Positions 18,305 to 28,358 of a stretch of DNA of 64,000 nucleotides are shown one piece after another. The position numbers were made by a program, and so were the translations under genes. A model generated the notes under the pieces. That model ran no database searches. It saw only the letters and a list, made by a program, of their open reading frames with translations, and was not told where the DNA came from. The DNA comes from Octopus sinensis. Its lineage: Eukaryota. The DNA is taken from NCBI RefSeq assembly GCF_006345805.1, contig NC_043011.1:9672001-9736000 (forward strand). Direction: 5' to 3'. How positions within the stretch are numbered: position 1 is the first letter of the stretch; the number at the start of each line of letters is the position of its first letter.

Positions 18305-18538
18305 TAGATAGATAGATAGATAGACAGATAGATAGATAGATAGATAGATAGATAGATAGATAAATAGATAGATGATGGGTAGATAGATAGATAGATAGAT
18401 AGATGGGTAGATAGATAGATAGATAGATAGATAGATAGATAGATAGATAGATAGATGGGTAGATAGATAGATAGATAGATAGATGGGTATATGAGTAATA
18501 GATAGATAGATGATAGATAGATAGCAGATAGATAGATA
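18305..18538. repeat. (GATA)n microsatellite, left flank of the Tx1 pair, preceded by (TA)n
   Basis: Direct reading; contains GATGGGTAGAT variant units. Confidence 0.95.
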
Positions 18539-21500
18539 TGTTTCTGTTTCTTTATTAGCCACACAGGGCTGCACACAGATAGAACAAATTACAAGGTAGA
18601 GGCTTTTCTTTTGAAGGTATTAAAAAAAAAAAAAAGGGGGGGGGGAGAAAAAAAAATGATCAATAGGGATCGTTATCACAGAAATGTCAATATGAAGTGT
18701 AAAGGGGAGGACAGGTGAGGTTTACCCGTGGAAAGAAAGCCTGCGGAAAAGACCACGGTAACCTCGGTCAATGAAGTCACATTTTATATTTCTTTTTTTT
18801 TTTTTTTTTTTTTTTTTTTTGCAAATAAGCAACTCTCTGTTTTCGATTTCTGGGTTCATAGGACTATGCTCAAGGTGGCTTCGTCATTCATACGTGCCAT
18901 TCTTGCTACATTCACCATCTTTTTTTAAAACATTCGCTAGACAAAACTTGCCTCTCTACTCTCACTTTCCTTTTCAAGTGGTACTTGAAGAAGTTGATGA
19001 GAGATTGACCAGAGAGGAAAGTGATTGTCTCCAATCCTTTCAGACGCGTCCACCAGATACATTCTTTCGCCATAGCCACAAGGATGATGAAAATAGCTCT
19101 TCCTTCCCGTTTGAAGGAAGGAGGCGTGACAATATTGACGATAGACTCAGCTGATAAGCCGACTCGTCCCACACGTGACAGCAGTTGTTCGACATAAGCC
19201 CACAGGTCGGAAATTGTTGGACACTGAACGAGTGCGTGCAGAACGGTTTCGTCGCTCTGACCGCATCTCGGGCAGGTCGGCCCCGTGTTTCTCGAGCCGT
19301 GTCTGTAGAGCTTATCCCGAACGGGTAGCGCTTCTCGGTAGCACTGCCAGGCCAGGGATCTCTGGAAGTTTCCATGGGCCCTGGCCCGAAGTCGTCCCGA
19401 ACAGGCGGGTCAGGTACTCCTCGTCGACGTCCAGGTTCGCCCCGAGCTCGTCGTCGTACCTCCCCTCCACTAAACCCCTATAGAATGCTTTGGTTGTGTT
19501 GAAGTCACTTAAGGTCGACCCAGGACGGCAGAGTTGCTTGAGAGCAACGCGACACTCGCGGTGCCATTCGCCCTTTCCTCGGCCTCTTTTTGATCCACGA
19601 CTGCAGTTCGGTCATGGAGACGAGCTGCGGGAAAGCGTGCCTCACAAACGGCGACCACACCTGTTCACCGTCGTCTACATAGAGCCAGAGATGTCGCAGT
19701 CTCAGCGCGTGTCTGCACATCATCATCAACGGCATGCCCAGCCCTCCTTTTAACGGTGTTGACAGCAATGGATCGCCTGACCATCGGGACGCATCCTTTC
19801 CACAAGAAGCGAAATAGGATGCGTTGTAGTTTGGTGATGGTAGGGTCGGGACAAGGTACGACGGTCAGCGGTAGTAGATGACGGACGCGATGTACGTGTT
19901 CGCCACCTCCGCTCGACCTTTTAGGGACAGTTTCCTCTCGGCCCATTGCCGGGCGAGAGTGACCACCCTACTCGTTATCTCGTTCCAGTTCTTCTCCACT
20001 TGGAGGTCCGGACCAAACCAGACCCCGAGCAACTCAACCGGGCCGTCGGTCCAGCATCCCACGACGGAGGCGCTGGTGACGGCATGGGCTTGCTTCTCTC
20101 CAGTGCCTAGTCGCAAGCCCACTGACTTTTCCCGGTTGATTTTTCGCTCCTGTCACCGCTTCGTAGTTTTTTCAGTGTCTCGCCGACCAGCTCGATGTGC
20201 TCGTGGCTAGACACTATGACGGTGACGTCGTCCGCGTATGCAGACAAGCGCTCGTCCCGCATCCCAATTCTCGCGGGATGCCCCTTAGAGTCGCCAGCTT
20301 CCGCAGTAGTGGCTCAAGAGTCAATACGTATAGAAGCGCCGAGAGGGGGCATCCCTGACGGACCGAACGTGCAATGTCGAAAGGTCTCGATAGATGTCCA
20401 TTTACGCGAATTACCGAACGGATGCCTCTGTACAAGGCAGCTATCCAACCGCGGAAGACGGGACCGAAACCAGCCGCTCTCAGGACTGCCTCCAAGTATC
20501 GATGGTCTACCCTATCAAAGGCTTTTGATTGATCCAAGTTGATCAGGGCCCCACCCATGCAGGTTCGTTAACTACCCTGTCTATGATGTAGCGCATCAGA
20601 TGGAGGTTGTCATGGATGGTCCGGCCTGGCACGGCGCATGTTTGCGCCTTGTCGACCAGTTTCTCGATGACAAGCGCCAACCTCTTGGCTAGCACCTTGG
20701 CCAAAATTTTCAAGTCTGCATTAAGCAGAGTGATGGGCCTAAAGTTATCTATTACATTTCCCTTGTTTAGATCTTTCTTCAGCAGTGTTACGGCTCCTCG
20801 GCTCACAAAACCAGGAATGCTCCCGTTTTGCTGCCAGTTGCAGTACACCGCCGCCAGAAGATCTCCAAACAAGTCTGGCATACAATTGTAAAGCTCGTAG
20901 GGTTACCATCCAACCCGGTGATTTGTCCCTCGAGCATTCTGCCATCGCTTCCCGCACTTCCGCCGCCGTGATGGCACCTTCGCAGCACCCTGCCTTTCTT
21001 GTCGAGAGTCGTGGTAGGCTATGTAGGTAGGCACTGAAGTCCACCCTACGTTCTTGCCCTCCACTCGTTCCGAACAGTCGGGCAAAATGCTGCTGAAAGG
21101 CCTCACAACATTTTACTTGGCTCGAGCAATTCGCGCCCCTGTTCATCTACAGTGACCGAATGGTGGCTTTGTTGCCCTGTTGCGCCTCTGCCACCCGGCC
21201 TCTCTCGCGCTCCAACACCTTCGTTCCTTAGAGCACGCATCCTAGCTCTGACAGCACATCCTTCGTGTTTGGCGTTGAAGTGTTGGTCGAGGGCCAACCT
21301 CGCCGCCAAAACGTCGGATGCGATGCCGCTTCTAATTGCCTCTTCTAGCTTCTTAACTAGCTCCCCTCTACTCTATTTCTATCTATGGCTAGTGCTTTGC
21401 TGTACCTAATCGCTTCTGCTTTTACTGCTCTCTTGAGGGCAAACCACCATTTGTTTGTTGATGATGGCTCCGCGTCAAAGCCCTCTTTACTAGTGTGCTA

Positions 21501-21949
21501 ATCCGGTCTCTGAAAACTTGTCTCGATGGGAAAGACGCGTTTAGTTTCCAGTACCGGGACCCTGCCTAAGTGTCTTACCTAAGTCTAGCGTACATGTCAC
21601 AAGTTTGTGATCCGTGTAGCTGACTATGTTGAATTGTGGACATCCTATGCTATCTCTATCTACTGTCCTACACAGTATCCTATCTAGATACGATCTCGAC
21701 GACCCGATGCGGTTGCTCCATGTCCACGTTGGCGCATTCGGGTGGTCTAGTCGAAACCTGTCAGACAGTTGAAGCGTCTGAGCAGGTCTCTGAGGCATTT
21801 GCATCCCCGTCTATCCTATCTCTACCCACGTAGTCTACATGCGTGTCCAAGGTAGCATTCCAATCCCCCACTGAGAGTAAAGGACGAGACGTTCCCAAGA
21901 AAACTTCTAGACGTTGAAAGAAATCCGCCCGCCCATTTGACCTGTTTTT
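18539..21949 (-). mobile_element. 5'-truncated Tx1-clade LINE (second subfamily), broken ORF2 from mid-endonuclease to stop at ~18856, plus ~315-bp 3'UTR
   Basis: Fragments SVGDWNATLD, NFRPITLLNADLKI, LDQSKAFDRV, SVRQGCPLS, KLSLKGRAEVAN and CPRCGQSDETVLH are colinear with the full-length copy. A hand-aligned 60-nt block (20281-20340 vs ~23822-23881) has 7 mismatches, mostly third-position. AATAAA on minus at 18551-18556. Confidence 0.9.
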
Positions 21950-27774: not shown

Positions 27775-27974
27775 TTTCTAATGTCGAGAAGAAAATAACA
27801 GAAATGAAATGGGGTCGAAACTGCCCCTAGGGGCGAATTCCTCCCTTGGAAAAGCACTCAAATGAAAGTTGGTTGCCTTACACACCTTATTTGCAAAAAT
27901 CTACACAAAAATTGGCCTATAAATAGTCAAAATAAATGATTACCTTCGGAGCTGAAACGACATCACATCCGTCA

Positions 27975-28358
27975 ATAGATAGATAGATATATAGATAGAT
28001 ATATATATAGATGGGTAGATAGATAGATAGATAGATAGATAGATAGATAGATAGATAGATAGATAGATAGATAGATAGATAGATAGATAGATAGATAGAT
28101 AGAAAGATAGATAGATAGATAGATAGATAGATAGATAGATAGATAGATAGATAGATAGATAGATAGATAGATAGAGAAGATGGATGGATGGATGGATGGA
28201 TGGATACATAGATAGATAGATAGATAGATAGATAGATAGATAGATAGATAGATAGATAGATAGATAGATAGATAGATAGATAGATAGATAGATAGATAGA
28301 GAAGATGGATGGATGGATAGATAGATAGATAGTAGATAGATAGATAGATAGATAGATA
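27975..28358. repeat. (GATA)n/(GATG)n array, right flank of the Tx1 pair
   Basis: Direct reading. Confidence 0.95.

Follow-up and report, generated by a model that had tools for sequence, protein, structure and literature searches.

Two diverged L1/Tx1-type LINEs stacked in a (GATA)n array of Octopus sinensis suggest a preference for a tetranucleotide microsatellite

Two LINE copies between three (TATC)n arrays

A 64,000-nucleotide stretch of the Octopus sinensis genome (contig NC_043011.1, positions 9,672,001 to 9,736,000 of assembly GCF_006345805.1; hereafter the window, with all coordinates counted from its first letter) contains two long interspersed nuclear elements (LINEs) of L1/Tx1 type, which lie in the same orientation between three arrays of one tetranucleotide microsatellite. 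The arrays, called by Tandem Repeats Finder, read (GATA)n on the plus strand and (TATC)n on the minus strand, which is the sense strand of both elements. Along the sense strand the order is (TATC)~96, a 5.7-kb LINE, (TATC)~80, a 3.4-kb 5'-truncated LINE and (TATC)~67. The array directly 5' of the full-length element (27975-28358, minus strand) comprises 95.8 copies with 93% matches and includes blocks of CATC. The middle array (21949-22263, minus strand; 80.5 copies, 79% matches) is the most degenerate of the three and borders both elements, the full-length one at its 3' end and the truncated one at its 5' end, and the array 3' of the truncated copy (18272-18538, minus strand; 67.8 copies, 86% matches) continues into (TA)n. 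These three are by far the largest GATA arrays of the window, which is rich in other microsatellites; an Rfam scan of the window gave no match. An earlier note, made from the letters of this stretch, had proposed the same alternation of arrays with a truncated and a full-length element in one orientation, and Tandem Repeats Finder together with the mapping of the elements confirmed it, with the start of the first array corrected from 18305 to 18272. The four element-array junctions were each read through, and all of them enter (TATC)n directly on the sense strand without a terminal poly(A), as had been claimed.

The 5.7-kb copy (22264..27974, minus strand, as are all features of both elements) has a 5' untranslated region (UTR), an ORF1 region, an ORF2 with endonuclease, reverse transcriptase (RT) and zf-RVT segments, and a shortened 3'UTR. 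Its earlier description as a full-length element therefore holds for its structure but not for its coding capacity, as ORF2 is interrupted by one or more in-frame stops and by several frameshifts. The 5'UTR of about 200 nt (27775..27974) starts with TGACGGATG... immediately after the array. The ORF1 region (25899..27774) consists of two open reading frames (ORFs) in different frames, a low-complexity piece (27774..27202) and a piece with one CCHC knuckle (27011..25899), the latter scoring below the Pfam cut-off (zf-CCHC, E 0.0011, 19.4 bits against 20.8). The two-frame split represents either two native ORFs or a single frameshifted ORF1. A protein search found no ORF1 homologue in the protein database, and weak tblastn matches connect the region with the ORF1 regions of related elements in Argonauta hians. 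The low complexity of the first piece is extreme, with runs of Thr and Asn stemming from an (ACC)n/(TGG)n-type repeat at 27519-27561.

ORF2 (22489..25841, with its start at 25841) is broken by a frameshift near 24588-24567 at the border between endonuclease and RT, an in-frame stop at 23959-23961 inside the RT, a stop at about 23032 and additional frameshifts near 23050, 22890-22700 and 22640. The apurinic/apyrimidinic-type endonuclease (APE; 25209..25775) corresponds to residues 23-211 of a 424-aa ORF (Pfam Exo_endo_phos, E 3.5e-16), and the RT domain (23563..24315) is split by the one in-frame stop, with RVT_1 recognized in both ORF pieces. The 3'UTR (22264..22488) joins the array at ...CCTTATAT|TATC, which is the point where the truncated copy reads CATATTGAC (...CTTCATATTGAC), a TATC-like internal site. 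The full-length copy ends without the last ~170 nt of the canonical 3' end of the family, including its conserved 3' box. Judged from the sequence of this junction, the short 3'UTR would reflect either priming at the internal TATC-like site or a later deletion between TATC-like sequences.

The truncated copy (18539..21948) belongs to a second subfamily. It starts inside the endonuclease at a position equivalent to about 25485 in the full-length copy, contains many frameshifts and stops and is further decayed than its neighbour; both copies are dead. Near its 3' end lies the conserved 3'-terminal box TGTGTGGCTAATAAAGAAA (18547..18565), followed by CAGAAACATATC(TATC)n, so that the end reads across as TGTGTGGCTAATAAAGAAACAGAAACATATC(TATC)n. 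An A32 run in its 3'UTR (18789..18820) was considered as a poly(A) tail and ruled out: homologous 3'UTR sequence extends past the run in both copies and in Argonauta, and the run is therefore an internal, expanded A-rich tract and not the end of the element.

Comparison of the endonuclease with solved structures returned human L1 ORF2p and the L1 endonuclease as best relatives (E 1e-8 to 4e-7), with no match to the TRAS1 and R1 endonucleases, and the profile of the RT and C-terminal region matched human L1 ORF2p with E 3e-49 versus 1e-26 or worse for R2 proteins. For the zf-RVT domain (PF13966), the truncated copy reaches 35.9 bits against a cut-off of 27.5, and the frameshifted full-length copy 25.7 bits; intact relatives have the domain as well. 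The absence of a poly(A) tail and a 3' end abutting the target repeat, as expected of the Tx1 clade, are found in both copies. The L1-like endonuclease and RT, the zf-RVT domain, the CCHC-type ORF1, the lack of poly(A) and the apparently repeat-directed insertion fit elements of L1-Tx1 type. These comparisons establish an affinity with the L1 group; membership of the Tx1 clade proper and kinship with the microsatellite-specific elements Kibi and Koshi are unproven, and no database match obtained in protein searches with the window element bore the Tx1 name. In cephalopods, L1-Tx1 LINEs have been described as abundant and recently active in studies that defined families via RepeatMasker classes and did not address insertion targets (PMC13282606, PMC8967140).

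Origin of the two copies and of the arrays

Two similar elements in tandem between similar arrays, all in one orientation, could in principle have arisen by segmental duplication, with a block of array and element copied in tandem and one copy truncated later. The divergence of the copies makes this extremely improbable. They share 81.7% nucleotide identity over 3.1 kb, and differences amount to 13.8, 9.2 and 29.2% at codon positions 1, 2 and 3 (in the reading frames of the full-length copy), so that third positions have diverged about 2.5 times as much as positions 1 and 2. Local duplication is excluded by this pattern because a third-position excess arises under selection on the protein, that is, in separate lineages that were active before insertion. 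Moreover, the 3'UTR ends differ, and in a rough distance tree of the group the distance between the two window copies is similar to that between other subfamilies. The two window copies are thus, as far as their sequences tell, independent insertions of two diverged subfamilies rather than products of a duplication. This agrees with the earlier note in its conclusion more than in its details. The differences had been described as mostly synonymous, which is roughly true at best (249 synonymous versus 210 non-synonymous codon changes) despite the clear third-position excess, and the 3'UTRs had been called different, which applies to their ends but not to a stretch of about 90 nt that is homologous between the copies; the full-length copy simply joins the array early.

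The three arrays have a rare double-substitution variant in common. TACCCATC occurs once in the array 27975-28358, three times in 21949-22263 and four times in 18272-18538, and is absent from an unoccupied GATA array of the window (4657-4724), which served as a control, and from the Argonauta arrays. Because TACCCATC is common to all three, the arrays suggest a single ancestral array that would already have carried the variant and was later split by two insertions. The unoccupied array is a (GATA)17 with the same strand orientation as the occupied arrays, and is embedded in (CATA)n/(TG)n.

Related elements and the preference for (TATC)n

Protein searches recovered no copy from the window's own genome, and an exact look-up of the 424-aa endonuclease ORF was likewise without match. 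The nearest relatives with an organism label are from cephalopods, namely Argonauta hians with 47-65% aa identity and, more distantly, Acanthosepion pharaonis, and closer relatives (62-77% aa) without organism label lie in metagenome or fragmented assemblies. These matches point to a cephalopod host and not to a teleost, as a comparison with Kibi and Koshi would imply. Four short contigs (L124, L125, L127 and L128) stop before the element termini and thus provide no junctions, and a Sepia locus (L130) and a further locus (L003) contain distant family members without clear termini.

An informative case is an Argonauta hians locus (L001) that was selected by protein homology and not by repeats. 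It holds two elements, A and B, with a mutual identity of 67-70%. Both share the 3' box ...(A/T)TGTGGCTAATAAAGAAA, which leads into TCTATCTATCTATCTATC in A and into CATATC(TATC)14 in B. Downstream of (TATC)n, the two elements have the same flank (TAGTATTTACTT... and TAGTATTTACTTATTTATCGAAT..., 98.9% identity over 179 bp). Upstream, the short flank TTTTTCTTGTCTGTAAAACTC and a repeat of TATC type are likewise common to both, the repeat being (TATC)2(TGTC)5 before A and TATC CCTC (CATC)4 before B. Element B and the full-length copy of the window both start with CGGATG directly after the array. As A and B, at 67-70% identity, occupy paralogous units with the same outer flanks, the microsatellite appears to predate the insertions, and the locus indicates a unit of flank, (TATC)n and flank that would have been hit at its microsatellite by two members of the family. 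This pair is the nearest available stand-in for a comparison with an empty site. Two further observations concern element A itself: its 5'UTR contains two tandem units of about 157 bp (L001 4579-4743 and 4736-4888; 82.5% identical) reminiscent of the promoter "monomers" of some L1 families, and it carries a foreign insertion of about 3 kb between 63-bp repeats (L001 6401-9661).

The lineage ends in a conserved box, TGTGGCTAATAAAGAAA(C/T)(A)TCTAT, which was seen in 15 termini. The same box terminates relatives in Argonauta and in metagenome contigs as well as elements that resemble short interspersed nuclear elements (SINEs). A second Argonauta locus (L126) contains at least ten such SINE-like copies in two families, which have the terminal ~35 nt in common with the LINE. 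A tRNA-type head characterizes one family (L126 1472-1705, 2799-3025, 3132-3618, 13616-13855, 14824-15064 and 15065-15314) and the other is short (L126 ~1970, 5143, 13904 and 14253). All ten SINE-like termini carry a single TCTAT (...GAGAAATCTAT or GTGGCTAATAGAGAAATCTAT; TCCAT in one of them) that passes into unrelated flank without an array. Several of the copies are arranged head-to-tail, each inserted at the tail of the preceding one. Target-site duplications were readable in three cases, CTATTTCAAGGAA (13 nt), TATTATCTTTnTGCC and ATCTATAG, the last of which has the tail of another SINE as its target. All three start with (C)TAT, and priming therefore seems to use TATC homology. The SINE-like families are likely non-autonomous partners of this LINE lineage. 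On their evidence, the terminal TCTAT would belong to the element itself, the machinery would not routinely add long TATC tails, and integration would need only a few bases, (C)TAT, at the start of the target. Folding of the 3' box yielded only a 4-bp hairpin without covariation, and a metagenome scan with the 17-base box returned 120 loci, all of them chance matches without TATC tail or homologous ORF, the pattern being too short.

Taken together, we consider it probable that the lineage integrates preferentially into (TATC)n, by complementarity between tail and target, by endonuclease specificity or by both. In the scenario that we propose, a pre-existing (TATC)n/(GATA)n array would have received two insertions in one orientation, from two diverged subfamilies of a single L1/Tx1-type lineage whose RNA is predicted to end in ...TGTGGCTAATAAAGAAA(C/T)(A)UCUAU. 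The endonuclease would nick the GATA-containing (antisense) strand, a strand choice that we infer, and the freed ...ATAG-3' end would pair with the terminal UCUAU/(UAUC)n of the RNA and prime reverse transcription. Such pairing between RNA and target is established for target-primed reverse transcription in other LINEs. Any site starting with (C)TAT could then serve as target, and a (TATC)n array would act as a hot spot for repeated hits and head-to-tail stacking because it offers the target site in every register. The share of endonuclease specificity, as against RNA-target pairing, in this scheme is likewise inferred.

Alternatively, the elements might insert regardless of microsatellites, with the arrays produced by RT slippage on the terminal UCUAU or by later growth, and with each upstream array left as a tail by the neighbouring element on that side or by an insertion that consisted of a tail only. 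Compatible with such an origin are the (A)TCTAT at the 3' terminus of the family itself, the relatives without an array and the microsatellite tails that LINEs of other clades are documented to make (PMC2887409). Nevertheless we regard it as unlikely. Since the SINE-like termini with the same box carry one TCTAT only, the long arrays beside the LINEs are better explained as targets than as products. No element precedes the purest and longest of the arrays (27975-28358), which is situated 5' of the full-length element, the TATC-type repeats of Argonauta are found upstream of both 5' ends within the shared flank, and TACCCATC is common to all three window arrays. Even tail synthesis would still require insertion beside an earlier tail, which is itself targeting of TATC. 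The preference of the earlier note for targeting over tail synthesis is thus backed by the shared variant, the paralogous Argonauta arrays and the SINE-like partners without long tails.

Long GATA arrays might also be generally fragile or accessible and collect many kinds of insertions, with no role for the endonuclease or the RNA tail of this family. Microsatellites are indeed targeted by many unrelated transposon lineages (PMC4640811, PMC8869645). Such a generic hot spot is quite improbable here, as the arrays are occupied by this family only and in one orientation in two species, as the 3' box terminates in the motif of the array itself, and as the other microsatellites of the window and its free GATA array are without such an insertion.

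How strict the preference for (TATC)n is can be judged from the LINE copies with both junctions visible, a small sample of six of which two are the discovery pair. TATC-type repeats are present on both flanks in four of the six (the window pair and Argonauta A and B), and all four array-associated copies, from two species, have TATC on the sense strand. The remaining two, the full-length and the short copy of L126, are without TATC flanks, and they head a number of observations that weigh against (TATC)n as target. At the 3' end of the full-length L126 element, ...GGTGGCTAAGAAAGAAAT|TTAATTAC, TATC is absent, and (ATTT)n precedes the element; the short copy ends in one TCTAT followed by unrelated DNA. 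A relative with 73% aa identity to the window ORF2 (L131) ends in ...GTGGCCAATAAAAGAAATC and continues as (ATT)n to the end of the contig (2000-2105), and another (L129) ends in ...GGCCAATCAACACACACATC (CAACACACACATC). Furthermore, the sites of A and B are adjacent paralogues, so that the independence of the two events may be incomplete, no empty allele was seen, and the SINE evidence comes from Argonauta only, the SINE in question not having been found in the window's genome.

TATC is accordingly to be regarded, on these junctions, as a preference and not as an absolute rule. The earlier proposal of a GATA-specific lineage captured the association, which recurs in two species, but was too strong given the L126 element without TATC, the (ATT)n of L131 and the SINE-like sites that share only (C)TAT. 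Locus L002 (3850-3877) ends in ...GAAACGATTATTAC at the contig end, with the 3' box followed by GATTATTAC; L131 and L002 have 70-77% aa identity to the window ORF2. In the rough tree, the TATC-associated copies form two separate branches, between which the (ATT)n group and L126 are placed. This distribution suggests a microsatellite-associated lineage in which the motif would have switched between subfamilies, and the TATC habit may be old. The short L126 copy (12284-12653) is a 5'-truncated copy of about 240 bp of the same 3'UTR, located about 130 bp downstream of the full-length element in the same orientation; these two insertions, too, are stacked, but no TATC array accompanies them. The downstream flanks of L126 and L001 have a match of 11 bases with no extension (E 0.033), which was taken as chance.

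Comparison with known systems and other features of the window

Specialists of the Tx1 clade are known for (TC)n, (TTC)n, (TTCC)n, (TTTC)n, small RNA genes and transposons (PMC4494074), and other clades use (TG)n and further repeats (PMC4640811). Kibi and Koshi are teleost Tx1-clade LINEs specific for (TC)n and (TTC)n, respectively, according to the account of Kojima & Fujiwara (2004) in PMC4494074. Like these, the elements described here encode an APE, are of L1/Tx1 type, lack poly(A), have, in the TATC-associated copies, one microsatellite on both sides in a fixed orientation and appear to use different repeat motifs in different subfamilies. Unlike these, they are associated with a tetranucleotide, (TATC)n/(GATA)n, reside in cephalopods and show a preference, since some relatives and the SINE-like partners insert outside arrays. 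Preferences for tetranucleotide microsatellites have been described for crocodilian Tx1-1_Crp, Tx1-2_AMi and others, which favour (TTCC)n/(TTTC)n, with "target specific" denoting a sequence present in more than 20% of flanks (PMC4494074). These crocodilian elements also have partner SINEs that share their tails; their host and motif differ, the crocodilian repeats being polypyrimidine and TATC being mixed.

Site selectivity within the same broad group is also a property of Tx1L of Xenopus laevis, which inserts into the Tx1D transposon and whose endonuclease specificity was shown by Christensen et al. (2000), as summarized in PMC8869645. Target choice in Tx1L is attributed to its APE endonuclease, and the Argonauta insertions resemble it in lying inside a repeated unit that carries the target. 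In contrast to Tx1L, the window and Argonauta flanks share the microsatellite only, which is why the microsatellite, and not a host transposon, would be the common target. LINE/SINE pairs with short 3'-terminal repeats, and RTE-type elements that give rise to microsatellites or pair with them (PMC2887409, PMC6007223), likewise have a conserved 3' box and a short terminal repeat common to LINE and SINE. Their target duplications start with the motif of the tail, and this implies that the RNA tail pairs with the nicked target. In those systems, from the L2 and RTE clades, it is mostly the tail that generates the microsatellite, whereas in the present case arrays are found before the 5' ends as well. 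Life in simple repeats is shared, finally, with Togen, a (TG)n element of the NeSL group, some HERO families and the CryptonV DNA transposons (PMC4640811, PMC8869645), whose endonucleases or recombinases are unrelated, pointing to convergence.

No Tx1 or other non-LTR element with (GATA)n or (TCTA)n as target was found in the searchable literature; Repbase and Dfam were not queried, and the novelty of the target depends on them. If the preference holds, APE-type LINEs would have in (GATA)n a microsatellite target that had not been catalogued before. Dwelling in microsatellites is a recognized "safe-haven" strategy of LINEs. Few LINEs of the APE type are known to follow it, mostly in vertebrates and with polypyrimidine targets, and a (GATA)n-preferring cephalopod lineage would broaden the range of both hosts and motifs. 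It would extend a known concept to a new motif and a new host group without changing it, and would help to explain part of the unusually repeat-rich genomes of cephalopods. GATA microsatellite markers in cephalopods may, as a practical warning, hide LINE insertions.

A wider interpretation, which we offer tentatively as possible rather than as the expected outcome, is that of a cephalopod L1/Tx1-type lineage with a simple-repeat habitat, in which the motif would have been switched between subfamilies together with the last bases of the 3' RNA box and which would mobilize tRNA-derived SINEs. The motifs concerned are (TATC)n in the window species and Argonauta and (ATT)n in a close relative. If true, the lineage would constitute a natural experiment on the co-evolution of RNA-tail/target pairing and endonuclease specificity. 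The combination of a 3' box ending in the target motif, subfamilies with different repeats and partner SINEs would offer a tractable system in which to separate endonuclease specificity from tail pairing.

Elsewhere in the window, tandem repeats with units of 62, 62 and 69 bp are located at 51461-51655, 62736-62987 and 44997-45126, respectively, in G+C-richer DNA, and the final 4 kb have a GC content of 43-50% as compared to about 36% elsewhere. Pfam and Rfam gave no match in this tandem-repeat DNA or in the last 4 kb. An ORF at 54172-54711 (plus strand) is weakly similar to the RT of the LINE described here (31% over 90 aa, E 4e-6) and probably represents a relic of an older, unrelated non-LTR element.

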